Sequence record: NC_019408.1
Length of the DNA stretch: 64,000 nt
Direction: 5' to 3' (one strand)
Of the stretch, positions 46,529 through 56,054 are shown piece by piece. The notes under the pieces were generated by a model. That model did no database searches. It saw only the letters and a program-made list of their open reading frames with translations, and was not told where the DNA came from. Positions within the stretch are counted from its first letter, which is position 1, and each line of letters begins with the position of its first letter. Both the position numbers and the translations under genes were made by a program.

Positions 46529-46531
46529 GGC

Positions 46532-47200
46532 ATGTCGACCGACATCACCATGCCGCCTGACACGACGATCTTCGCGGACGTCAAGCTCAATGGCGGCGCC
46601 GGCGCGCCCGTCGATCTGGCCGATGGCGAACTCTACATCGACGAGGCTGGACGCAAGCTCTATGTCGAGACCGTGGTCGGCGTCCAGCCGATCCCGCTCG
46701 ACGTCGGCTACATCCCGCGCCGGCCCAGCGGCACGCCGCTCGACCACGTGGTCACCAAGACCGCCACCGGCTCCGAGTGGGGGCCGCTCCAGGGCGGCGC
46801 GGGCGGCTCTCCGTTCGACGCGGCTGAGTTCCGCGTGCCGGGCATCGCGCCCACGGGCCTGGACACGGTCGTTCTGCCGGGCGCGTCCGGTGGCATGGCT
46901 CTCTTCGAGATGCCGCTCCAGGACGTCCTCCTGAGCGTGCGTGTACACGCCTCCGCCGGCGTCGGCGCGGTAACCCTGGGACTCTACCCGTTCAACGGCT
47001 CCCTGGGCTCGGAAATCTTCGCCCAGACCCTGACGTTCACCGCGCCCGAGACCCAACTGGTGCCCGTCTCCCTGGCCTTGACGCCGGGGGTGTACGCCTG
47101 GGTGTGGACGGGGGCGTCCTCCGTGACTCTGGACGCGGTCAAGGGCTCCCTGCCCTGGGCGACGAGCGAGCAGGTCCACCCCGTGGCGATGAAGTTCTAA
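46532..47200 (+). CDS. Fibre-associated protein
   Basis: LADGELYIDEAGRKLYV resembles the C-terminal module of the giant protein. Confidence 0.7.
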   Translation: MSTDITMPPDTTIFADVKLNGGAGAPVDLADGELYIDEAGRKLYVETVVGVQPIPLDVGYIPRRPSGTPLDHVVTKTATGSEWGPLQGGAGGSPFDAAEFRVPGIAPTGLDTVVLPGASGGMALFEMPLQDVLLSVRVHASAGVGAVTLGLYPFNGSLGSEIFAQTLTFTAPETQLVPVSLALTPGVYAWVWTGASSVTLDAVKGSLPWATSEQVHPVAMKF

Positions 47201-47976
47201 TGGCTATCCAGAACCCCCACTCCACCACGCCGGGCGTCATGCCCCACCTGACGCCGGGCGAGATCGGCGTCAACAAGGCCGATGACATCCTCTGGTTCCG
47301 GTCCGAGGGCCGCCGCGTGCCGATCATCCTGAGCGATCTGGATCGGGCGCCGCCGCTCGACGGCCTGACCGGCGCGCCGCTGACCCTGGAAGGTGGCCAG
47401 CCGATCTGGAACGCGCATCTGGCCCCGTCCTCCGTGGTCAATGGGCAGGTCAAGGTCGATCTGCCGCCGGCGACGGGCCTGCACGCCATGCCCAGCGTCC
47501 TGCTGCAAGGCCTGGGAGCCGATCGCGCCCTGGCGGCCAACGATCTGGACCTCTCGCCCTTCTACGTCCGGTCCGACTCCATCACCCTGACCCAGTTGGC
47601 GTTCAGCGTCCGCTCGGCGGGCGCGCCGGCCATGCGGGTGGGGATCGTCGACAGCTTCGGCGTGGTCCAGGCCGACATTCTGGTCGCCGCGCCCGTGGTG
47701 GGCGCCAACGTGGTCAACCTCTCGCCGGTGCTGACGCTCCAGCGCGGCGTCTACCGCACGATCCTGGCAACCACCGGCGCGGTGACGATCGGGGTGGTCA
47801 CGGGCGCGCGCATGGAGCAGGGCTGGGACATCATCGGGGACACGCCCTCCTTCATCCACGGCTACAGCGGCTCGAAGAACACCGGCGGGGGGATCGGCAG
47901 TTTGCCGGGCCTGACCGCGCGGCGCTCGGGCGTGCCGGGTCAGGATCATTCGGTCCTGATGCGCTGGACGGCGTAG
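47200..47976 (+). CDS. Fibre-associated protein
   Basis: TTPGVMPHLTPGEIGVNKADDILWF, same module. Confidence 0.7.
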   Translation: MAIQNPHSTTPGVMPHLTPGEIGVNKADDILWFRSEGRRVPIILSDLDRAPPLDGLTGAPLTLEGGQPIWNAHLAPSSVVNGQVKVDLPPATGLHAMPSVLLQGLGADRALAANDLDLSPFYVRSDSITLTQLAFSVRSAGAPAMRVGIVDSFGVVQADILVAAPVVGANVVNLSPVLTLQRGVYRTILATTGAVTIGVVTGARMEQGWDIIGDTPSFIHGYSGSKNTGGGIGSLPGLTARRSGVPGQDHSVLMRWTA

Positions 47977-48081
47977 TGGGGAGAGCCGGGTGGGGCTTTG
48001 TATCGCTGGGGGAGCGAGGGACGGGCCGCTCCCCGGCGGCCCACCCGCTCTTTATAGACGGCCCTTTCCCGGCCCGCAAGA

Positions 48082-48118
48082 CGTGAATCTTGACATGGTG
48101 GAAGATCGGGGTTAACCT
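48082..48118 (+). promoter_or_regulatory. CGTGAATC-TTGACA promoter
   Basis: TTGACA-N17-TAACCT. Confidence 0.75.
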
Positions 48119-48148
48119 GCGCGCTCATCTGGAGTTTCGAGCGCCACC

Positions 48149-48412
48149 ATGGCTGAGCTTGTCCGCATCTATCACCCTGAGACGAACGAGCCGTTCGACG
48201 TGATCCCGTCGACCGCCGAACGTCTGCGCCTGGGTGATGGTCCCGACGGGCTGGTCTGGCTCTCGCAGCCCTTCGAGCGCGTCGCTGTCGAAGCCGCGCC
48301 GGAAGCCCCCAAGGGGCGAGGTCGTAAGCGCGTCAGCGCGCCCGTCTCGGAAGAAGCCGAAGACGACGGGTGGCGTGACGTGCCGACCGAGGAAGATCGC
48401 GAAGCCGCGTAA
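48149..48412 (+). CDS. Hypothetical protein
   Basis: 87 aa; codon bias. Confidence 0.65.
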   Translation: MAELVRIYHPETNEPFDVIPSTAERLRLGDGPDGLVWLSQPFERVAVEAAPEAPKGRGRKRVSAPVSEEAEDDGWRDVPTEEDREAA

Positions 48413-48465
48413 GCCGCGTAAGGCGCTTCGTCTTCCACTCTGCTGAAATTCGGTCTCAGTCCCAT

Positions 48466-48541
48466 GTCGGTCTAGCTCATGGGGTAGAGCGGCGGTCTCC
48501 AAAACCGCGCGTGGCAGGTTCGAGTCCTGCGTCCGGCGCCA
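48466..48541 (+). tRNA. tRNA-Trp(CCA)
   Basis: GCGGT-CTCCAAA-ACCGC arm; TTCGA T-loop; encoded CCA. Confidence 0.9.
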
Positions 48542-48546
48542 TTTCG

Positions 48547-48620
48547 CATCCGTAGTATATAGGTGATTACAGCGCGTTGCCAACGCGTAGAGTCGGGTTC
48601 GAGTCCCGACGGATGCTCCA
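48547..48620 (+). tRNA. tRNA-Gly(GCC)
   Basis: GCGCG-TTGCCAA-CGCGT. Confidence 0.9.
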
Positions 48621-48624
48621 TTTC

Positions 48625-48698
48625 GCGGGTATAGCTCAAAGGGAGAGTTGCTGCCTTCCAAGCAGAAGATGCGAGTTCGAGCCTCGCTATCCGCTCCA
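48625..48698 (+). tRNA. tRNA-Gly(TCC)
   Basis: CTGC-CTTCCAA-GCAG. Confidence 0.9.
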
Positions 48699-49006
48699 AC
48701 CTCGTGGTGAGGTGAGAACGCCCTCCTCATGCACCGCTTCGGCGGTAAAGTAGGCTCCAGCCGAAGAGATGCGGGACCAGGGGACCCCGCCACCACGAAC
48801 GAAGTGCGCCCCAGGTACGCCTCTGACCGAGAAAGCCCGCTGGCCGTGGGTGAAGTGTATGGTCAAGCGTCTGGGTCCCCGTCCGCCAGGACCGGCGAAG
48901 GCCATATGCGCCGAATTCCTGGACCGGATCGTAGGAGGGGAGCGTTGGCGCCGGCCCAGCAGGGAAGGGTGAAGAGCCCAGCCGGCAATTTTCTTCAACA
49001 ACAAGC

Positions 49007-49035
49007 TTGACAGCCGTCGAGTTTCGTGAGAGCCT
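49007..49035 (+). promoter_or_regulatory. Sigma70-type promoter P1
   Basis: TTGACA..CGTCG....GTGAGAGC, nearly the same as P2. Confidence 0.7.
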
Positions 49036-49045
49036 CCTCAACATT

Positions 49046-49108
49046 ATGACGCACCTCCTCACCCGTTACGAACGCGAGGCCACCGGCCTCGATACCACCA
49101 CCGCCTAA
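49046..49108 (+). CDS. Candidate leader peptide MTHLLTRYEREATGLDTTTA
   Basis: Near-leaderless ATG after P1; stop codon lies in a hairpin loop; upstream of tRNA-Glu and tRNA-Asp. Confidence 0.5.
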   Translation: MTHLLTRYEREATGLDTTTA

Positions 49109-49140
49109 AAGCGGTTTTGGTCCGAGGCCTCTTGTGATGT

Positions 49141-49218
49141 GGCCCGGTCGTCTAGCGGTTTGCAGGATTCCTGACTTTCAATCAGGAGAGCGGAGTTCGA
49201 GTCTCCGTCGGGCTTCCA
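49141..49218 (+). tRNA. tRNA-Glu(TTC)
   Basis: CCTGA-CTTTCAA-TCAGG. Confidence 0.9.
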
Positions 49219-49243
49219 CACCCCCAACTCATCTCTGAGCTTT

Positions 49244-49318
49244 GGTGCCGTCGTATATGGGTTATTATCACCGGCTGTCTCCCGGTGGAAACGGGTTCGA
49301 GTCCCGTCGGCATCGCCA
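49244..49318 (+). tRNA. tRNA-Asp(GTC)
   Basis: ACCGG-CTGTCTC-CCGGT. Confidence 0.9.
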
Positions 49319-49381
49319 GCCCTCGCAGCAAATCCAGGTTCCAGCGCGGCTGTTCCGCGCGCCTGCATGCACGAGGCTACC

Positions 49382-49603
49382 ATGTTTTTCGATCCCTCCT
49401 CGCAGTCGAGCGACGCGCTCCTGCGCCACGTCTCCACCCAATCTCCGTATGCGGAAGCGGCTCGCACCGAGTTGCTGTCCCGAGGCCTCGTTCCGCTCCT
49501 GACGCGGTTCAACGGCTGGCGCCTCGCCCCGAGCGCGCCGTTTCCGCAGCACCTCATCCCGCGCCCCGATCCGCTCGCGAAGTACACGTGGCGGGCGGGA
49601 TGA
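49382..49603 (+). CDS. Hypothetical protein
   Basis: GAGG RBS; 73 aa. Confidence 0.5.
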   Translation: MFFDPSSQSSDALLRHVSTQSPYAEAARTELLSRGLVPLLTRFNGWRLAPSAPFPQHLIPRPDPLAKYTWRAG

Positions 49604-49622
49604 AAAATATTCACCACGACGC

Positions 49623-49651
49623 TTGACATCCGTCGGGAGTTGTGAGAGCTT
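49623..49651 (+). promoter_or_regulatory. Sigma70-type promoter P2
   Basis: TTGACATCCGTCGGGAGTTGTGAGAGCTT. Confidence 0.7.
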
Positions 49652-49744
49652 ATGGACTGTCACGGATCACGACACTCCTCGGAGTGCAAAAGCGTGATCC
49701 TTCGTTTTTCACGGCCGCCAGCGGGTGGCCAGTCGAGAGTTGTC

Positions 49745-49882
49745 ATGTTCGCCTTGTCGCATCTCAGCCTGAGCACGAAAGCCGCCTCCCCGGCGACGCT
49801 TTCGCTTGCCCTGCTGGCGACGGCCGCGAAGCCCTCGACCAAGCCGACCACCTCGGCCTCGCACTCGACGGAGACCCACTAG
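49745..49882 (+). CDS. Leader peptide of tRNA array A (45 aa)
   Basis: 42 of 44 codons after Met encode P/T/K/L/H/A/S, the amino acids of the 14 downstream tRNAs. Confidence 0.8.
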   Translation: MFALSHLSLSTKAASPATLSLALLATAAKPSTKPTTSASHSTETH

Positions 49883-49946
49883 GGCTCTCGTCTCGGGTGC
49901 AGGCCTTGGAGCCGCACCCGCTACCTACATCCTGTAGACCTAGCGC

Positions 49947-49985
49947 AAGGCGGCTCCTCACCAGGGAGACCGCCTTTTCTTTTTC
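49947..49985 (+). terminator. Attenuator terminator before array A
   Basis: AAGGCGGCTCC/GGAGACCGCCTT stem followed by TTCTTTTT. Confidence 0.85.
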
Positions 49986-49996
49986 GCGTTGATCAT

Positions 49997-50072
49997 CGGG
50001 GTGTAGCTCAGTCGGTAGAGCGCTCGGTTCGGGACCGAGAGGCCGTGGGTTCGAGTCCCGCCACCCAGACCA
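49997..50072 (+). tRNA. tRNA-Pro(CGG)
   Basis: CTCGG-TTCGGGA-CCGAG. Confidence 0.9.
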
Positions 50073-50079
50073 ACGCCAT

Positions 50080-50156
50080 CGGGATGTAGCTCAGTTTGGG
50101 AGAGCGCGCGGCTGGGGGCCGCGAGGCCGCAGGTTCAAGTCCTGCCACCCCGACCA
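50080..50156 (+). tRNA. tRNA-Pro(GGG)
   Basis: CGCGG-CTGGGGG-CCGCG. Confidence 0.9.
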
Positions 50157-50161
50157 ACAAC

Positions 50162-50234
50162 GCTGTTGCGCGTGGCTTCGCGCCCACCCCTTGGTATGGG
50201 GCGGTAGAAGGTTCAATTCCTTCCAGCAGCACCA
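50162..50234 (+). tRNA. tRNA-Thr(GGT), reduced D-arm
   Basis: CCCC-TTGGTAT-GGGG; GCTGTTG/CAGCAGC acceptor. Confidence 0.75.
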
Positions 50235-50239
50235 ACAAC

Positions 50240-50309
50240 GCCGATGCCTCTGGGAGGACGCGCCTTTCGTAAGGGTGCGAGGTGGGTTCAATCCCCACTT
50301 TCGGCTCCA
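50240..50309 (+). tRNA. tRNA-Thr(CGT), compact
   Basis: CGCGCCT-TTCGTAA-GGGTGCG; 3-nt D-loop. Confidence 0.72.
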
Positions 50310-50364
50310 TCAAACAGCCTGCGGGCTATATCGGAGATCAAGTTTCATAGCCTCCAGGCTATAT

Positions 50365-50451
50365 GGATGTGTCACCTCAGTGGCGAGAGGAACGGGCTCT
50401 TAATCCGTCAGCGCAAGCTCACCGTGGGTTCGAGTCCCACCACATCCTCCA
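50365..50451 (+). tRNA. tRNA-Lys(CTT), long variable arm
   Basis: ACGGG-CTCTTAA-TCCGT. Confidence 0.85.
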
Positions 50452-50456
50452 ACAAT

Positions 50457-50546
50457 GCACAAGTGACCCGAGCGGCGAAGGGCGTCGACTTTTAATCGAC
50501 TAGGCGTCCAGCCTCACCGAGGGTTCGAGTCCCTCCTTGTGCTCCA
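50457..50546 (+). tRNA. tRNA-Lys(TTT), long variable arm
   Basis: GTCGA-CTTTTAA-TCGAC. Confidence 0.85.
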
Positions 50547-50549
50547 TGT

Positions 50550-50636
50550 GCGAATGTGGCGGAACTGGTAGACGCGCCGGCCTCAGGTGCCGGTGCCCTT
50601 CGGGGCGTGTGGGTTCGAGTCCCACCTTTCGTACCA
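50550..50636 (+). tRNA. tRNA-Leu(CAG)
   Basis: CCGGC-CTCAGGT-GCCGG. Confidence 0.9.
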
Positions 50637-50643
50637 ACGACAT

Positions 50644-50731
50644 GCCTTGCTGGCGGAAGTGGTAGACGCACTGTTCTCAAAAAGCAGGCCGGGCGACCGG
50701 GCTCTGGGTTCGATCCCCAGGTGAGGCACCA
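50644..50731 (+). tRNA. tRNA-Leu(CAA)
   Basis: CTGTT-CTCAAAA-AGCAG. Confidence 0.9.
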
Positions 50732-50738
50732 AGACTGA

Positions 50739-50826
50739 TGCGAAGTGGCGGAAACTGGTAGACGCACCGGCATGAGAGGCCGGCGCCCTTCGGGGCGTGA
50801 GGGTTCGAGTCCCTTCTTCGCGACCA
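50739..50826 (+). tRNA. tRNA-Leu(GAG)
   Basis: CCGGC-ATGAGAG-GCCGG. Confidence 0.88.
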
Positions 50827-50906
50827 ATGTCCCGATCGGGAAGATTCCAGGCGGCGCGGCGCTCGCGACACCCGGATTTTCCCGATCGGGAAGACGACGA
50901 GATTAT

Positions 50907-50977
50907 GCTGATCGCCGCTGGGCGGGGAGCGGGTTGTGTCCCCGCTAGGCACGGTTCGATCCCGTGGGTCAGTACCA
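50907..50977 (+). tRNA. tRNA-His(GTG), compact, no G-1, A73
   Basis: AGCGGG-TTGTGTC-CCCGCT; absence of G-1 matches the Caulobacter-type tRNA-His. Confidence 0.75.
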
Positions 50978-50982
50978 GATAC

Positions 50983-51053
50983 GGGGTATGCGCAGGGCGC
51001 AGGCATCCTTTGCAAGGAAGTCGGGGTGGGTTCGAGTCCCACATACTCCACCA
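50983..51053 (+). tRNA. tRNA-Ala(TGC), compact D-arm
   Basis: CATCC-TTTGCAA-GGAAG; GGGGTAT/ATACTCC acceptor includes G3-U70. Confidence 0.75.
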
Positions 51054-51057
51054 ACAT

Positions 51058-51147
51058 GGAAGGTCAACCGGACAGGCGCGCCGGGACTGCCTCGAAAGCA
51101 GATCGCACTCTCCGGGGTGTGGGGATCGAGACCTCGGCCTTCCTCCA
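51058..51147 (+). tRNA. tRNA-Ser(CGA)
   Basis: CTGC-CTCGAAA-GCAG; long variable arm. Confidence 0.88.
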
Positions 51148-51151
51148 ATAT

Positions 51152-51241
51152 GGTGAGCGAACGGGACAGGCGTGCCCGGTCCGCCTGGAAAGCGCGACGC
51201 ACTCTCCGGGGTGTGGGATTCGAGTTCTCCGCTCACCGCCA
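51152..51241 (+). tRNA. tRNA-Ser(GGA)
   Basis: CGC-CTGGAAA-GCG; long variable arm. Confidence 0.88.
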
Positions 51242-51245
51242 ACAG

Positions 51246-51336
51246 GGTAGGCGAACCGGACAGGCGCGCCGGCGCCGTTTGCTAAACGAGCGGCACTCTC
51301 CGGGGGTGTGGGATTCAAGCTCTCCGCCTACCGCCA
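51246..51336 (+). tRNA. tRNA-Ser(GCT)
   Basis: CGT-TTGCTAA-ACG; long variable arm. Confidence 0.88.
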
Positions 51337-51612
51337 TTTTGATGTTGACGCCGGCCAGCACCGATGTCATACGTCACGACAGAGCCAACGCCCTCGGCCG
51401 GGTTGGTGGATGTGCCGGTTGCATCGCGCCCCGTCGAGCCCTAGTAGCTCTTGCCGTGGAGTTTTCCGCCTCCCTCCCAGACAAGGAGGCGGACCCCTAC
51501 ATCGCGATCCAGTGATCGTCGGCGACGGGCGCCGTCAGAGCCCCTTGCGCGCGGGAACGCTGCGGAGGGGATCGTCCCGACCACATTTTTCGACCCACGT
51601 TAACTTTTCTTC

Positions 51613-51641
51613 TTGACCTTCCCGAAAACGTAGTGTAGCTT
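51613..51641 (+). promoter_or_regulatory. Sigma70-type promoter P3
   Basis: TTGACC-N17-TAGCTT; predicted start site about 51648, so the ATG is leaderless. Confidence 0.75.
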
Positions 51642-51648
51642 TCCCGTC

Positions 51649-51744
51649 ATGAGCAAGTCGTACCGTCAATTCGTGCAGATTCAGGTCGTCCGGAATTTCC
51701 GGGCGGGCCGTTCGCGCATGGATGATGGCGGGACCTTTATCTAG
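51649..51744 (+). CDS. Leader peptide of tRNA array B (31 aa)
   Basis: Codons 5-18 (YRQFVQIQVVRNFR) are all read by tRNAs of the downstream array. Confidence 0.8.
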   Translation: MSKSYRQFVQIQVVRNFRAGRSRMDDGGTFI

Positions 51745-51770
51745 GTCCAGACACCTCAACCCAATTCGCG

Positions 51771-51810
51771 AAAGGCCCGCCTGGACACCCAGGCGGGCCT
51801 TTTTCTTTTT
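51771..51810 (+). terminator. Attenuator terminator before array B
   Basis: AAAGGCCCGCCTGG-ACAC-CCAGGCGGGCCTTT followed by TTCTTTTT. Confidence 0.9.
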
Positions 51811-51867
51811 CCGTTTCGCTGATCCGCAGGAGATCGCAGATGAACAACGGGGGCTAGTCCTCCACAT

Positions 51868-51952
51868 GGATGCTTAAAGCTGGAGGGCTCCAGCCGGGGG
51901 CTGTAAACCCCCTCTCTTCGGAGGAGTGGTTCGATCCCACAAGCATCCACCA
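51868..51952 (+). tRNA. tRNA-Tyr(GTA)
   Basis: GGGGG-CTGTAAA-CCCCC; long variable arm. Confidence 0.88.
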
Positions 51953-51957
51953 ATCAT

Positions 51958-52033
51958 GGACTCGTAGCTCAGCAGGTAGAGCGCCGGCTTGAAACCCCGG
52001 AGGTCGGAGGTTCGATTCCTCCCGTTTCCACCA
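51958..52033 (+). tRNA. tRNA-Phe(GAA)
   Basis: Canonical spacing gives loop TTGAAAC; C31-C39 mismatch. Confidence 0.85.
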
Positions 52034-52038
52034 ACAAC

Positions 52039-52114
52039 GCCCGATGAGCCAGATGGGAAGGCACCGCTTTGACATGGCGGCATTGAGAAGGTTCGATTCC
52101 TTCATCAGGCACCA
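52039..52114 (+). tRNA. tRNA-Val(GAC)
   Basis: CCGCT-TTGACAT-GGCGG. Confidence 0.88.
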
Positions 52115-52119
52115 ACCAC

Positions 52120-52195
52120 GCAAGTGTAGCTCAGTTGGTAGAGCAGCGGACCGATAATCCGCCCGTCCCTGGTTCGAGTCCAGGCATTTGCACCA
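52120..52195 (+). tRNA. tRNA-Ile(GAT)
   Basis: GCGGA-CCGATAA-TCCGC (C33). Confidence 0.88.
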
Positions 52196-52202
52196 TTTCT
52201 GA

Positions 52203-52278
52203 TGTGGCATAGCTCAGGGGTCAGAGCGCGCGCTTGATAAGCGTGAGGTCGGTGGTTCGAGACCACCTGTCACTACCA
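52203..52278 (+). tRNA. tRNA-Ile(GAT)
   Basis: CGCGC-TTGATAA-GCGTG. Confidence 0.88.
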
Positions 52279-52312
52279 ATTCCCAGGCCCGGTGGAGATG
52301 CGCCGGTTCTGT

Positions 52313-52386
52313 AGGCGATTAGCTCAATGGTAGAGCAGGGGTGCCACATACCTCGGTCGTAGGTTCGATTCCTACATCGCCCACCA
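52313..52386 (+). tRNA. tRNA-Val(CAC), atypical G32/C33
   Basis: GGGGT-GCCACAT-ACCTC. Confidence 0.78.
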
Positions 52387-52392
52387 ACATGT

Positions 52393-52466
52393 TGAGGGTT
52401 CGTCTAACGGTAGGACGCCTGGGTCTGGTCCAGGTAATCTAGGTTCGAGTCCTAGCCCCTCATCCA
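52393..52466 (+). tRNA. tRNA-Gln(CTG)
   Basis: CCTGG-GTCTGGT-CCAGG. Confidence 0.88.
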
Positions 52467-52472
52467 AGTTGT

Positions 52473-52547
52473 TCTCGGGTCGTCTAATGGTAAGACATCT
52501 GGTTTTGGTCCAGAGGATTGGGGTTCGATTCCTTGGCCGAGAGCCAA
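52473..52547 (+). tRNA. tRNA-Gln(TTG)
   Basis: TCTGG-TTTTGGT-CCAGA. Confidence 0.88.
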
Positions 52548-52563
52548 CTGCTTTAGAGTTCAT

Positions 52564-52637
52564 TCCAGTCAATGCACAAGGTGTGCAGCGGCACTGTTAA
52601 TGCCTGTGAGCCCGGTTCGATTCCGGGGTCTGGAGCC
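52564..52637 (+). tRNA. tRNA-Asn(GTT)
   Basis: GGCA-CTGTTAA-TGCC. Confidence 0.88.
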
Positions 52638-52663
52638 AACACGCCGGCCAAGGCCGGTCATGC

Positions 52664-52746
52664 GCCCTGGTAACCGAGGGGGATTACGAATCCCTTAGTC
52701 GTAGCAGGAGTTGAAAAGGGTGGTTCGAATCCACTCCAGGGTGCCA
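52664..52746 (+). tRNA. tRNA-Arg(ACG)-like, no D-arm, long variable region
   Basis: GCCCTGG/CCAGGGT acceptor; GGGA-TTACGAA-TCCC; intact T-arm and CCA. Confidence 0.6.
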
Positions 52747-52753
52747 AATCTAT

Positions 52754-52836
52754 AGCGCGCAGGCCGATCAGGATCATCGTCAGGCGTCGCCCTCCGAAGG
52801 CGAAGAGGCCCGGTTCGAGTCCGGGGCGCGCTGCCA
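52754..52836 (+). tRNA. tRNA-Arg(CCG), enlarged D-loop
   Basis: TCGCC-CTCCGAA-GGCGA. Confidence 0.8.
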
Positions 52837-52839
52837 ACT

Positions 52840-52917
52840 GCGCGGGTAGCTCAACGGAACCAGAGCAGCCGTCTTCTACACGGTGGGTTGGGGGTTCGAG
52901 TCCCTCCCCGTGCGCCA
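52840..52917 (+). tRNA. tRNA-Arg(TCT)
   Basis: GCCGT-CTTCTAC-ACGGT. Confidence 0.88.
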
Positions 52918-53254
52918 AAACTTGACGGGCAATGCCGAATCGCCCAACTTCGACCCTGGCTCTCGGTGGGCCACGATTGCACGCCGTCGGTGCCCTGGCC
53001 GTACACCCAGGGAGCAGCCCGGCGGCGTTCCAACACGGTTTCTGGACGATCTTCGAACGCGGCTTGCCGTGGAGGGGTGCTGGATAGGGCCGAGGTAGGA
53101 GGAACCATCGAGCATCTCCTAATCCCGGCCTGGGCCTCCTGGGGGCTCCGCTGGGTCGATCAGGGCCTGACCCGACCCCGGAGATGCGCCGACCTAGATC
53201 ACCCAGGATCGCTGGGTCGGTTGAAAGGGTCTGAAATTTTCTGGCTCCTATGTG

Positions 53255-53285
53255 TTGACACGCATTTCGGAGCCGGCTACAACCC
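53255..53285 (+). promoter_or_regulatory. Sigma70 promoter with no downstream ORF
   Basis: TTGACA-N17-TACAAC (GCTACAAC). Confidence 0.7.
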
Positions 53286-53424
53286 TCCTCGTAGAGCGGC
53301 GCTGGGGCCTGAAGGCCCCAATCGTTGAGCCTCTGCGTTGTCGTCAGAAACGGCCCGCCGGCATCCCGCCGCGCGGGCCGTTTCGTCATGGGCGTCATGC
53401 GACCTTGAGTCCACCGTGGGTAGT

Positions 53425-53463
53425 GTCGTGAATCTTGACTTTCGACCACCTTTCCGGTAGCTT
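53425..53463 (+). promoter_or_regulatory. GTCGTGAATC-TTGACT promoter
   Basis: N17 then TAGCTT. Confidence 0.75.
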
Positions 53464-53508
53464 CCCCTTCATCACCAACGCTCATAAGTCGGGGACTAGA
53501 GAGCCGAT

Positions 53509-53907
53509 ATGTCGCAAGACCACACCGGCTCCGCAACGCAGAGCCAAGAACACATCTTTCGTAAGCTGGATGAGCTTGGCGCAATGCACATGCGTACCCG
53601 CGAGGACATGGCCGAAGTCAAGGAGAAGGTGAAGACCATCGCCTCCTCTCAGGAGCGCTTTGAGCGCGACGTTTGGCGCGAGATGGACATTCGCCACGCC
53701 GAGACCAAGGAGCAACTGGCCGCCATCAAGAATCAAACCGCCGATCGGATCGACGAGATCGAGGCCAAGGTGAACACCATTCGCGAGGAGCGGATCGCCG
53801 AAAAAGCCCAGTGGCGTGGCCCCGAGAAGGTCATTGCCGGCATCGTCGCCCTGGCGGGCGGCGTCACCGCGATCGGCGTTCTCTGGAGCATCTTCAAACC
53901 CCACTAA
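53509..53907 (+). CDS. Coiled-coil protein with a C-terminal transmembrane helix
   Basis: Helical body; IAGIVALAGGVTAIGVLWSIF. Confidence 0.7.
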   Translation: MSQDHTGSATQSQEHIFRKLDELGAMHMRTREDMAEVKEKVKTIASSQERFERDVWREMDIRHAETKEQLAAIKNQTADRIDEIEAKVNTIREERIAEKAQWRGPEKVIAGIVALAGGVTAIGVLWSIFKPH

Positions 53908-53941
53908 GCCTACAGTCAAGCTTGTTCGCCTGCGGCCAGAA

Positions 53942-53982
53942 GTCGCGGTTCTTGACACCCCCCAGCGGCCCGAGCTAACCAT
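53942..53982 (+). promoter_or_regulatory. Variant promoter GTCGCGGTTC-TTGACA
   Basis: GCTAACCAT -10; GANTC absent. Confidence 0.55.
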
Positions 53983-54012
53983 AGGGTCATCTGTTCCTGG
54001 GGAGTTTCCTAG

Positions 54013-54234
54013 ATGGCTGCTGCGCTTACCCTCGTCTCCTGCGAGACGAACTTTTCGACCACCACGGACACCGATCCGGACGCGGCGCACGAGCGCCTCA
54101 TTCTGGTCCTCAACACCGCCTCAGAAGCGGGCCTTGGTGAAATGACGTTGGAAGTCAAAGAAGAGATCGAGGCCCTGCTCAAGCAGGCGTCTATCGAACT
54201 CTCGAACTGCCGGATCGTGGGGGGAGTTCCTTAA
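54013..54234 (+). CDS. Hypothetical protein
   Basis: GGAG RBS. Confidence 0.6.
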   Translation: MAAALTLVSCETNFSTTTDTDPDAAHERLILVLNTASEAGLGEMTLEVKEEIEALLKQASIELSNCRIVGGVP

Positions 54235-54256
54235 TCGCCATCCCAGAGGGAGCGAC

Positions 54257-55123
54257 GTGTCCGAGTCTTCCGAATTCAACCCGCTCGACCAATCCCAGTT
54301 CCCTCCTCGCCTCACCAAGGCTGCTGCGCGTCAGGCGCGGCGCCAGGAGCGCAGCCAGAAAAAGGACCCCACGGCGAACAAGCCCAACTACAAGGCGCTC
54401 GAAGCCAAGACTGAACGCCAGAAGCGCTACATCCAGGCGCTGAAGGCCGGCGAGAGCGCCATCGCCATCGGCGGGGCCGGCACGGGGAAGACCTACATCC
54501 CGTCCCGGCTCTTCGCCAAGAAGCTGATCGAAGGCAAGACCGAACGCCTGATCATCGCCCGCGTCACCGCCTCGCGGGCCAAGCACGCCCTGGGCTTCCT
54601 GCCCGGCAAGCTCGAAGCCAAGCTGGCCCCGTGGCTGGTGCCGGTGATCGAGGGCGTCAAGGCGGAAATGAACGCCCAGACCTATACGCAGTTGCAGGAG
54701 GCCGGCAAGATCGAGTTCGCCTCCTTCGAGCACATGCGCGGCCGGACCTTCGGCGAGTGCTGCGTCCTGCTGGACGAGGCCCAGAACGCCGACTACAAGG
54801 ACCTGAAGATGGTCCTGACCCGTTGGGGTGAGAACGCCCAGTACGCGGTCACCGGCGACGTCGACCAGATCGACGTGGACGACTCCGGGCTGGACACGGT
54901 CATCGACATCGTCGAGGCCAACGACATCCCCATCCACGTCATCGAGTTCACCGACGAAGACGTCGTGCGCTCGCCCATGGCCAAGGCCTGGGTCAAGGCC
55001 TTCTCCGCCCACGAGGGCAAGGACGGCCGGCCCCGGCGCTTCCACCGCCCGGCTGTCAGGAATCTTGACGCTTTGCCGGCGTTCATCGATAATGGCCATG
55101 TCACGAAACCCGTGGCATCGTGA
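54257..55123 (+). CDS. phoH: PhoH-family ATPase
   Basis: GGAGTGKT Walker A; LGFLPG.L..KL.PW; MRGRTF; LLDEAQN; LTRWGE; GDVDQID. Confidence 0.93.
   Translation: MSESSEFNPLDQSQFPPRLTKAAARQARRQERSQKKDPTANKPNYKALEAKTERQKRYIQALKAGESAIAIGGAGTGKTYIPSRLFAKKLIEGKTERLIIARVTASRAKHALGFLPGKLEAKLAPWLVPVIEGVKAEMNAQTYTQLQEAGKIEFASFEHMRGRTFGECCVLLDEAQNADYKDLKMVLTRWGENAQYAVTGDVDQIDVDDSGLDTVIDIVEANDIPIHVIEFTDEDVVRSPMAKAWVKAFSAHEGKDGRPRRFHRPAVRNLDALPAFIDNGHVTKPVAS
55055..55093 (+). promoter_or_regulatory. GTCAGGAATC-TTGACG promoter inside the phoH 3' end
   Basis: N17 then GATAAT. Confidence 0.6.
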
Positions 55124-55124
55124 C
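55100..55124. promoter_or_regulatory. GTCAC-N15-GTGAC operator-like palindrome
   Basis: GTCACGAAACCCGTGGCATCGTGAC. Confidence 0.55.
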
Positions 55125-55140
55125 AAAGACGTAGAGCACC

Positions 55141-55662
55141 ATGGCCTTCACCTTCGTTGTTGAGACCGGCGCCGGCGACCCGGCCGCGAACTCGTACTGC
55201 GACGTGCAGTTCGCGGACGACTACATCTACGCCAACGTCTACTCGAACACCGCCTGGGCCGCCTTGGAGGACGAGGACAAGGAACGCTTCCTGGTCCGCG
55301 CCTCCAAGTACCTGGACCGGACGGTGCAATGGGCGGGGGAGAAGATCGAGGAGGACTCCGGCCTGCGCTGGCCGCGCGCCGGGGTCTATGACGTCGACGG
55401 CTTCCTGATCCCCAGCGACGCCATCCCGCAGCAGTTGATGGAGGCCACCGCCGAAATGGCGGCGGCGCTCCTCAACAACGACTGGACCTCGCCGCAGACC
55501 ACGCGCGGCATGAAGGAAATCCAGGTCGACGTCATCGAACTGAAGTTCGACACCGAGGTCCAGCGCGGCTCGATGCCGGACATCGTCATGCAAATCCTGG
55601 AGGGCCTGGGCGTGGTCAAGACCGGCCAGCGCCCGGCCTTCAAGAAGATCATCCGGCACTAA
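55141..55662 (+). CDS. Head-tail connector/adaptor protein
   Basis: VETGAG..AANSY..V..AD.Y...A..YLD...W.G.......L.WPR.G family motif. Confidence 0.75.
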   Translation: MAFTFVVETGAGDPAANSYCDVQFADDYIYANVYSNTAWAALEDEDKERFLVRASKYLDRTVQWAGEKIEEDSGLRWPRAGVYDVDGFLIPSDAIPQQLMEATAEMAAALLNNDWTSPQTTRGMKEIQVDVIELKFDTEVQRGSMPDIVMQILEGLGVVKTGQRPAFKKIIRH

Positions 55663-56054
55663 TGGCGCTCGAAGCGTTCATCCAGTCGCAGGTCCTGGTT
55701 GCCTTCAACCAGCTTGACGACCTCTGCAAGCGCTGGACCTATGTCCAGCGTTCGGGGACTGGCGTGCGCGACGTCGAGAGCGGCAAGACCGTCTACCCCA
55801 CGACCGAGATCGACATCCCCAAGGCCGTGCGGGTGCGCTTCAAGAAGGACGAGAAGGACAAGACCGGGCAGGTCCTGGTCGGCGAGAAGCTCCTCTTCCC
55901 GCGCGTCTACCTGCCCAAGGGCTTCGAGACCAAGACGTCCGACTACCTCATCGACGAGGCGGACGTGATCTGGGAGATCATGAGCGACCTGTCGGACCCG
56001 GCCAAGGCCGTGGCGATCCTCCAGGTGCGCACCTCCCGGATCGTGACGCCGTGA
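55662..56054 (+). CDS. Putative head closure protein
   Basis: Position and size. Confidence 0.55.
   Translation: MALEAFIQSQVLVAFNQLDDLCKRWTYVQRSGTGVRDVESGKTVYPTTEIDIPKAVRVRFKKDEKDKTGQVLVGEKLLFPRVYLPKGFETKTSDYLIDEADVIWEIMSDLSDPAKAVAILQVRTSRIVTP

Follow-up and report, generated by a model that had tools for sequence, protein, structure and literature searches.

Candidate leader-peptide attenuators upstream of the tRNA arrays of a giant Caulobacter phage

Leader-peptide attenuation couples the progress of a ribosome over a short reading frame to the fate of a nearby transcription terminator. In the textbook case, the trp operon, four RNA segments pair in alternative ways, an upstream segment mimics the 3' arm of the terminator, and the terminator is thermodynamically stronger than the antiterminator, so that folding kinetics decide the outcome (the general mechanism is summarised in PMC1183508). 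The enterobacterial ilvGMEDA, ilvBN and thr leaders typically extend this scheme to codons for two or three amino acids at once, while the pheST attenuator of E. coli, with its pheM leader, applies it to a gene of the translation apparatus, an aminoacyl-tRNA synthetase. Other systems reach the terminator by different routes: T-box riboswitches bind uncharged tRNA directly and need no reading frame, and the pyrBI attenuator of E. coli probably senses UTP through polymerase pausing. The arrangement described here, in which short reading frames written largely in the codons of particular tRNAs precede the genes for those same tRNAs, was found in the window, the first 64 kb of Caulobacter phage CcrRogue (JX100814), and no prior description of it was found.

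The tRNA genes of the window lie on the + strand in blocks sorted by amino acid. A Trp-Gly-Gly block occupies 48466-48698 and is followed by array C at 49141-49318, which consists of tRNA-Glu(UUC) and tRNA-Asp(GUC). Array A, at 49997-51336, contains 14 genes (Pro CGG, Pro GGG, Thr GGU, Thr CGU, Lys CUU, Lys UUU, Leu CAG, Leu CAA, Leu GAG, His GUG, Ala UGC, Ser CGA, Ser GGA and Ser GCU), four of which appear only with relaxed ARAGORN settings. Array B, at about 51868-52917, contains 12 genes (Tyr GUA, Phe GAA, Val GAC, two Ile GAU, Val CAC, Gln CUG, Gln UUG, Asn GUU, Arg ACG, Arg CCG and Arg UCU). Within it, tRNA-Tyr was read by eye and by homology, and a gene called as Ile-aat is Asn-GTT by homology, both by reference to the genes called in Bajun, Kikimora and Colossus. 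An earlier note, made from the sequence alone, had recognised control units upstream of arrays A and B; that observation is confirmed and is stronger than described, and a third unit lies upstream of array C. Each of the three has a conserved TTGACA-type promoter-like box, a short ORF, mutually exclusive RNA pairings and a hairpin, all on the + strand.

Unit A begins with a promoter-like box at 49623-49651 (TTGACA, 17 nt, TGn + GAGCTT), the sequence and spacing of which are conserved in all lineages. The presumed 5' UTR, 49658-49744, has two conserved hairpins and a weak purine-rich Shine-Dalgarno-like motif, its start being inferred from the box. Leader A, at 49745-49882, is a 45-codon ORF annotated as the hypothetical protein gp083 (phrog_12742, unknown function). 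Near and beyond its end lie segment a (49855-49867, codons 38-41), which pairs with segment b; a hairpin at 49867-49893 that carries the stop codon in its loop and covaries between Rogue and phiCbK; segment b (49894-49905), which pairs with a or with c; and segment c (49908-49919), whose 3' half pairs with b and whose 5' half is a near-copy of the terminator 3' arm and pairs with f to make the antiterminator. Terminator A (49947-49984; dG -19.5) is a bulged hairpin at 49947-49976, with f (49950-49957) as its 5' arm core and g (49965-49974) as its 3' arm core, followed by a U tract at 49975-49984 that ends 12 nt before tRNA-Pro, leaving no room for a promoter between them.

Unit B has a box at 51613-51641 (TTGACC, 17 nt, TAGCTT) followed by 7 nt to the A of the ATG, and the distance from box to ATG is 36 nt in 18 of 20 phages and 37 nt in 2, which suggests a leaderless mRNA. 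Leader B is an unannotated ORF of 31 codons at 51649-51744. Region 1 (51684-51694, codons 12-16) lies inside the ORF and pairs with region 2 (51698-51709), a near-copy of terminator region 4 that can instead pair with region 3 to form the antiterminator. Terminator B (51770-51813; dG -29.3) comprises a 15-bp hairpin at 51770-51803, with region 3 at 51774-51784 and region 4 at 51789-51799, and a U tract; no promoter was detected after it.

Unit C, which the earlier note had not included, starts with a box at 49007-49035 (TTGACA, a 17-nt spacer and a weak -10-like hexamer preceded by TGn) that is conserved in all lineages with 6-10 nt between hexamer and ATG; this unit also looks leaderless. Leader C, at 49046-49108, has 20 codons, including two Glu codons and one Asp codon (GAU). 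The ORF is present upstream of tRNA-Glu in all 10 lineage representatives, and at least one Glu codon and the GAU codon are kept in every one. The hairpin, at 49085-49129 with a U-poor tail reaching 49136, takes its 5' arm from leader codons 14-20 and holds the stop codon in its loop, and its stems covary across lineages; an upstream heptamer at 49075-49081 is an exact copy of the base of the 3' arm (49123-49129). That said, the -10 elements are weak, and a simple consensus scan called none of the three promoters nor terminator A, which rest instead on conservation and on TransTermHP features in the phiCbK, Swift and Karma records, where the sites corresponding to terminator A and to the unit C hairpin are annotated as terminators. 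The final hairpin of unit A lacks a clean U tract in Colossus, PW and Bertelyvirus, and the tail of unit C is U-poor in most lineages.

The composition of the leaders is more than chance. In leader A, 42 of 44 residues belong to the seven amino acids of array A (P, T, K, L, H, A, S), the single best of 63,113 stop-free 44-aa windows in six frames (mean 19.5; best elsewhere 39), and in all 11 phages tested every tRNA of array A has a cognate codon in leader A. Codons 5-18 of leader B form a run of 14 made only of the seven amino acids of array B (Y, F, V, I, Q, N, R), the longest such run in six frames, the next being 10. The earlier note had each leader written in the codons of its own array, but leader B matches only in this core, with 18 of 30 residues overall, and it has no AGA or AGG codon for the array's Arg-UCU. 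Nor is the match of leader A perfect: six of its 10 Ala codons are GCC, which the array's only Ala tRNA (UGC) does not read under strict wobble rules, Phe2, Asn7 (in some phages) and Glu/Asp43 lie outside the set, and, given the peptide, covering all 14 isoacceptors is not significant at the synonymous level (P = 0.18).

The units recur across related phages. All three leaders sit immediately upstream of their own arrays in Poindextervirus, Shapirovirus, Colossusvirus, Bertelyvirus and three groups of Brevundimonas phages, and leader A does so in three uncultured contigs as well; in every lineage of Dolichocephalovirinae examined the leaders stay with their arrays, even where arrays A and B are 4-7 kb apart. 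In 19 leader A sequences, 26-30 of the first 30 codons after Met are in the set, and 10 of 11 distinct leader B sequences have a 14-15-codon run containing all seven amino acids. Selection acts on codon class, not on the peptide: among seven close phages there are 10 non-synonymous variants, all within the set, against 4.8 expected (P about 1e-4), and only one synonymous variant. Leader content also tracks array content in two cases. An AAA codon is present once in all 12 leaders A whose array has a Lys-UUU gene, at three non-homologous positions, and is absent from all 8 leaders without that gene, where the gaps in the arrays are not hidden tRNAs. An internal TGG occurs only in Bertelyvirus, where tRNA-Trp sits at the end of array A.

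Structural comparisons point the same way. Both the unit A and unit B leader RNAs fold better than all 200 shuffles (z = -6.6 and -4.5). The pairings of unit B are kept in 90.9% (1:2), 98.4% (2:3) and 99.5% (3:4) of cells, with 3, 3 and 4 pairs, respectively, showing changes on both sides, while partner-shift controls give 26-61%. In unit A, the a:b, b:c, c:f and f:g chain is found with different sequences at the same positions in six lineages, and segment a is the best partner of b within the ORF in 4 of 6. Folding does not, however, settle the switch. In equilibrium folding of the full-length RNAs the terminators win, except that masking a ribosome at codons 10-13 of leader B switches the ensemble to the antiterminator; sensor codons outside that window (Tyr, Arg, Phe, Asn) are not explained by the simple model. 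The unit A antiterminator c:f (8 bp) is weaker than f:g, so there the model depends on folding kinetics.

Taken as a whole, the comparative evidence supports the interpretation of the earlier note, that the ORFs are leader peptides of ribosome-mediated attenuators, each gating transcription of the tRNA array that follows it, and this is the likely explanation, although with no expression, transcript-end or ribosome-profiling data for these sites the start sites, translation of the leaders and direction of regulation are inferred. Transcription would start at the promoter-like box, probably at the A of the ATG in units B and C; leaderless and Shine-Dalgarno-less mRNAs are translated efficiently in Caulobacter (PMC4117421). 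A ribosome would then translate the leader while RNA polymerase moves towards a terminator that lies 12 to 55 nt before the first tRNA in units A and B. In the model for unit B, a ribosome held on region 1 at hungry Val, Gln or Ile codons frees region 2, so the antiterminator forms and the array is transcribed. In the model for unit A, a ribosome that reaches the end of the ORF in time covers segment a, b pairs with c and the terminator f:g forms, whereas delay at any of the about 35 sensor codons lets a pair with b and c capture f, and polymerase reads through. For unit C the direction cannot be derived. Each array would thus be under negative feedback from the decoding speed of its own codons, so that the phage tops up the tRNA sets that are limiting. 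The earlier note suggested host anticodon nucleases or starvation as triggers, which remain speculation; making more tRNA does not relieve amino-acid starvation, so the logic fits only a shortage of tRNA.

Other readings are possible but unlikely. The best of them is that the attenuators report the general state of translation or of transcription-translation coupling (ribosome availability, host shut-off or the stage of infection), the codon content being a side effect. In the unit A model any delay, or no translation at all, gives read-through, in unit C coupling alone could decide the outcome, and isoacceptor coverage at the synonymous level is not significant. Yet a general sensor has no reason to restrict each leader to the amino acids of its own array, to keep replacements within that set, or to gain AAA with Lys-UUU or TGG with a relocated tRNA-Trp. 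It is more doubtful that the elements have the opposite sign, with fluent translation promoting read-through and stalling promoting termination, as positive feedback or as a timer that switches the arrays on once translation of phage codons is running well. A ribosome anywhere in the second half of the unit C ORF covers the terminator's 5' arm, while a stall at the first Glu codon leaves the terminator free, and stalls at codons 15-25 of leader B cover region 2 and favour the terminator. But unit B has the full 1:2, 2:3 and 3:4 layout with the sensor codons on and just before region 1, an arrangement that in known attenuators means stalling gives read-through, a ribosome that arrives on time in unit A favours the terminator, and positive feedback on a scarce tRNA would be self-defeating. 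Least likely is that the ORFs encode small functional peptides of low complexity and the hairpins are constitutive partial terminators or RNA-processing signals, for although leader A forms a PHROG family, other Ala/Thr/Pro-rich stretches in the window reach 39 of 44 residues in the set and tRNA arrays need processing signals anyway, codon class is conserved where peptide sequence is not, the unannotated leader B has a run matching array B exactly, no Pfam family matches, and a plain terminator has no need for upstream near-copies of its 3' arm that covary with it.

Among the closest described systems, the ilvGMEDA, ilvBN and thr leaders have a short ORF rich in codons for several amino acids spread over more than 12 codons, an intrinsic terminator with a competing antiterminator, and an outcome decided by ribosome position; unit B has the same 1:2, 2:3, 3:4 logic. 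Here, however, the genes controlled are tRNA genes rather than those of biosynthetic enzymes, so the product of the operon itself decodes the sensor, seven amino acids are sensed rather than two or three, the mRNA is probably leaderless and the elements are encoded by a phage, and there is no sequence or covariance-model match to any Rfam leader family. In trp, no translation gives termination; in unit A an extra segment inside the ORF end reverses this in the model, so that a late or absent ribosome gives read-through, which lets a 45-codon ORF sense delays anywhere along it. The pheST leader likewise uses regulatory codons for the cognate amino acid, but it controls a synthetase rather than a tRNA gene and senses one amino acid. 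T-boxes also couple read-through to the state of a particular tRNA, but they control synthetase, biosynthesis and transport genes, no T-box match was found here, and the sensors here are translated codons. Finally, in unit C the leader ORF runs into the terminator hairpin in the manner of pyrBI, so that a ribosome close behind the polymerase would physically block the hairpin, but unit C keeps conserved Glu and Asp codons next to and inside the 5' arm, and it precedes the Glu and Asp tRNA genes.

The tRNA genes of Caulobacter phage CcrRogue (JX100814, whose coordinates are identical to those used here) are more numerous than the annotation suggests. ARAGORN at default settings finds 24 tRNA genes on the + strand, and relaxed settings together with homology add seven more (Thr-CGU, three Ser genes, Tyr-GUA and two Arg genes, at 50239-50308, 51058-51336, 51868-51955 and 52664-52836), all of which are absent from the GenBank record. 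In addition, the gene at 52564-52638, called 'Ile-aat' by default ARAGORN and likewise absent from the record, is Asn-GUU by homology. The published statements that Rogue lacks Ser, and that no phiCbK-like phage has Thr or Tyr tRNAs, look outdated. The genes form four blocks sorted by amino acid: Trp-Gly-Gly, Glu-Asp, array A with 14 genes for Pro, Thr, Lys, Leu, His, Ala and Ser, and array B with 12 genes for Tyr, Phe, Val, Ile, Gln, Asn and Arg. Both tRNA-Lys genes of array A (CUU and UUU; 50365-50546, + strand) are 87-90 nt long with a long variable arm, a shape that is usual for Leu, Ser and Tyr tRNAs but not for Lys, while Kikimora-type phages carry a 75-nt Lys-UUU instead. The last tRNA of array B (52840-52917) has anticodon UCC (Gly) in phiCbK (L004:5221-5298; L numbers denote retrieved sequences), where all relatives have UCU (Arg), a one-base change of anticodon identity. 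Palindromic TCCCGATCGGGA-type hairpin repeats also sit between tRNA genes in several lineages (window 50830-50895; L011:3429-3509; L126:1971-2046; L012:2802-2888; L013:3184-3263) and may be processing sites or small mobile repeats.

The observation in the earlier note of two tRNA arrays each preceded by a promoter, a short ORF, alternative pairings and a terminator is confirmed and extended: there are three such units. Upstream of Glu-Asp (unit C), of array A (unit A) and of array B (unit B) lies the same kind of module, consisting of a TTGACA-type box with a 17-nt spacer and a weak -10-like hexamer, a short ORF, and a hairpin. In units A and B the hairpin is a GC-rich stem with a long U tract, ending 12 nt before the first tRNA in unit A and 55 nt before it in unit B. 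A simple consensus scan for promoters and terminators called only terminator B, and the remaining signals were therefore judged on conservation; however, the phiCbK, Swift and Karma records carry TransTermHP terminators at all three homologous sites. Both leader RNAs fold far better than shuffled controls, with z = -6.6 for B and -4.5 for A. A longer 76-codon ORF starting at 49652 was rejected as the unit A leader because its start is not conserved in relatives.

The surroundings of the modules offer further detail. No leader was found for the Trp-Gly-Gly block, where gp081 ends 54 nt upstream with no terminator. Directly after tRNA-Gly(UCC), at 48702-48798 (+), a skipping-rope RNA (RF02924) scores 45.8 bits against a gathering score of 36.7; the 2012 genome paper reported no Rfam RNAs other than tRNAs. 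Between tRNA-Gly and the unit C promoter, a non-coding element of about 150 nt and unknown function (48840-48990, + strand; L009:3075-3233; L015:1932-2036) is shared with Colossus (117 of 165 aligned positions identical) and partly with Bambus, is absent from phiCbK-type phages, and has no Rfam match. Between tRNA-Asp and the unit A promoter lies gp082, a conserved 73-aa ORF of unknown function (phrog_14978; 49382-49603, + strand). A promoter-like TTGACG box lies right after the last Ser tRNA of array A (51345, + strand), and three TTGACA boxes elsewhere (20117, 22776 and 31064, + strand) share the same upstream decamer, suggesting a phage promoter family.

The composition of the leaders is extreme. 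Leader A (49745-49882, annotated gp083) has 42 of 44 residues from the seven amino acids of array A, the single best of 63,113 stop-free windows in six frames, where the mean is 19.5 and the best elsewhere is 39. Leader B (51649-51744, unannotated) has a 14-codon run, codons 5-18, made only of the seven amino acids of array B and using all seven; it is the longest such run in six frames, the next being 10 residues and Arg-rich. Every one of the 14 tRNAs of array A has a cognate codon in leader A. That said, resampling of synonymous codons showed that, given the peptide, this coverage is not significant (P = 0.18), so no significance is claimed for synonymous choice alone. There are also exceptions to the match: leader A includes six GCC codons that Ala-UGC does not strictly read, plus Phe2 and Glu43, and leader B has no codon for Arg-UCU.

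To examine conservation, the region was retrieved from 21 relatives belonging to Poindextervirus, Shapirovirus, Colossusvirus, Bertelyvirus and three groups of Brevundimonas phages, and a profile search with leader A then found three uncultured contigs. All three leaders are present everywhere, each directly upstream of its own array, even where arrays A and B are separated by 4-7 kb of genes and where other genes are inserted upstream. In 19 leader A sequences, 26-30 of the first 30 codons after Met are in the set, while the last ten or so codons are free and form an RNA segment (segment a, below) and the stop-codon hairpin. In 10 of 11 distinct leader B sequences, the run is 14-15 codons long and holds all seven amino acids. 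Pattern scans extended the distribution no further: a scan of IMG/VR returned only the known isolates, and a scan of metagenomes gave 94 hits, none next to a tRNA array, which are chance GC-rich terminators.

Selection on leader A acts on codon class. Among seven close phages, codons 2-40 show 10 non-synonymous variants, several of which need two or three base changes, and all 10 stay within the set, against 4.8 expected from one-base neighbours (P about 1e-4). There is only one synonymous variant, a pattern that is the opposite of a protein under purifying selection.

Leader content also tracks array content in two cases. AAA is a rare Lys codon (about 10% of Lys codons), yet it occurs exactly once in leader A in all 12 phages whose array has a Lys-UUU gene, at codon 12, 31 or 27 in three lineages, which are non-homologous positions, and it is absent from all 8 phages that lack that gene. 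In the phages without it, the space after Lys-CUU holds palindromic hairpins rather than a hidden tRNA, and Colossus has a second Lys-CUU-like gene instead. Similarly, an internal TGG (codon 24) occurs only in Bertelyvirus, where tRNA-Trp has moved to the end of array A, though Bambus and one uncultured contig have a TGG two or three codons before the stop, in the unconstrained tail. Other associations, namely TCA with Ser-UGA, CCA with Pro-UGG and CAG with Gln-CUG, show no consistent tracking. The association of AAA with Lys-UUU is the only codon-level signal retained.

In unit B, the distance from the TTGACA box to the ATG is 36 nt in 18 of 20 phages and 37 nt in 2, while the sequence between them varies, which places the likely start of transcription at the A of the ATG. 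Caulobacter has 375 leaderless mRNAs, translated as well as leadered ones (PMC4117421). Region 1 (51684-51694) lies inside the ORF and pairs with region 2 (51698-51709), a near-copy of region 4 that can pair with region 1 or with region 3, while region 3 (51774-51784) and region 4 (51789-51799) are the 5' and 3' arms of the terminator. Pairs were counted with a custom script in a 17-phage alignment. Helix 1:2 is paired in 90.9% of cells, with changes on both sides at 3 of 11 pairs; helix 2:3 in 98.4%, with 3 of 11; and helix 3:4 in 99.5%, with 4 of 11. Partner-shift controls give 26-61%. Automated terminator picking with partition-function scoring across lineages chose the wrong helices and was discarded. 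Masking a ribosome with its A site at codons 10-13 (Gln, Ile, Gln, Val) switches the ensemble to the antiterminator, but at other positions the terminator wins at equilibrium. In equilibrium folding of truncated unit B transcripts, by contrast, the antiterminator forms in almost every case, which shows that equilibrium models cannot settle the switch. The loop codons of hairpin 1:2 are under no structural constraint, yet they always encode amino acids of array B, suggesting that more codons matter than the simple model captures.

Unit A has a long ORF, and its terminator lies 65-100 nt beyond the stop. Five segments form a chain: a (49855-49867), which comprises codons 38-41 of the ORF; b (49894-49905), which pairs with a or c; c (49908-49919), whose 5' half mimics the 3' arm of the terminator; f (49950-57), the core of the terminator 5' arm; and g (49965-74), the core of the 3' arm. 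With no ribosome on a, a transcript cut in the terminator loop folds as a:b plus c:f, the antiterminator, whereas with the ORF end masked it folds as b:c plus the terminator f:g. The chain is found in six lineages, existing with different sequences at the same positions in Bajun, Kikimora, Bambus and two uncultured contigs, and segment a is the best partner of b within the whole ORF in 4 of 6 lineages. The model is therefore a race, in which a ribosome that reaches the ORF end on time gives termination and a ribosome delayed at any sensor codon gives read-through. This would explain how one leader can sample seven amino acids, but it is an inference that depends on a kinetic argument, as f:g beats c:f at equilibrium, and in Colossus, PW and Bertelyvirus the last hairpin lacks a clean U tract.

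Unit C is weaker as a terminator, and the direction of its regulation could not be derived. Its 20-21-codon ORF keeps at least one Glu codon and a GAU codon in every lineage, and its last seven codons form the 5' arm of a covarying hairpin, with the stop codon in the loop in all 10 lineage representatives. An upstream heptamer is an exact copy of the base of the 3' arm, though the tail is U-poor in most lineages.

Taken on sequence evidence alone, composition, conservation, substitution pattern, codon tracking and covariation support the interpretation put forward in the earlier note, that leader peptides sense the supply of the tRNAs encoded downstream and gate their transcription, although translation of the leaders, regulated read-through and its trigger are inferred. 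Annotated 'hypothetical proteins' of the gp083 type (phrog_12742) are probably leader peptides, and two further leaders are missing from the CcrRogue record. Phage tRNA genes are common, but how their expression is controlled is almost unknown, and they are usually treated as constitutive cargo. It is somewhat more likely than not that these are the first natural tRNA genes found to be autoregulated by ribosome-mediated attenuation, with each array gated by a leader that samples the decoding speed of its own codons and leader A acting as a multiplex speed gauge for seven amino acids and 14-15 isoacceptors. Such an arrangement would let the phage restore exactly the tRNA sets that run short in the infected cell, including after attack by host tRNA-cleaving defences. 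It would represent the most multiplexed natural attenuator described, a compact natural design for sensing the supply of many tRNA species at once, and a concrete, testable handle on the idea that phage tRNAs compensate for tRNA loss during infection.

No earlier description of such a system was found. Full-text literature searches gave no description of leader peptides upstream of phage tRNA genes, the phiCbK genome paper does not mention leaders or attenuation, and the phiCbK RNA-seq paper (PMC10688885) does not mention these sites. A permissive Rfam scan of 46000-56000 (E up to 1) returned tRNAs, skipping-rope RNA and weak chance hits, with no leader family (His, Thr, Leu, Trp, Phe leaders and similar) and no T-box. 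Pfam gave no hits, and in PHROGs leader A is phrog_12742, of unknown function.

The inferred mechanism class is ribosome-mediated attenuation. Unit B is closest to the multivalent ilv and thr leaders, with all three helices kept and supported by compensatory changes. In unit A, as in the trp attenuator, the terminator is favoured over the antiterminator at equilibrium. The layout of unit C, unlike that of units A and B, recalls the pyrBI attenuator in that the leader ORF extends into the terminator hairpin. The defining difference is the target. In all described attenuators of this class known to us, the regulated genes are for amino-acid biosynthesis, transport or synthetases, whereas here the downstream genes are tRNA arrays only, which is the point of novelty rather than a reason to doubt the mechanism. 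The products of each operon would thus decode the operon's own sensor, forming a feedback loop that would be a new target class for the oldest known RNA-based control mechanism.
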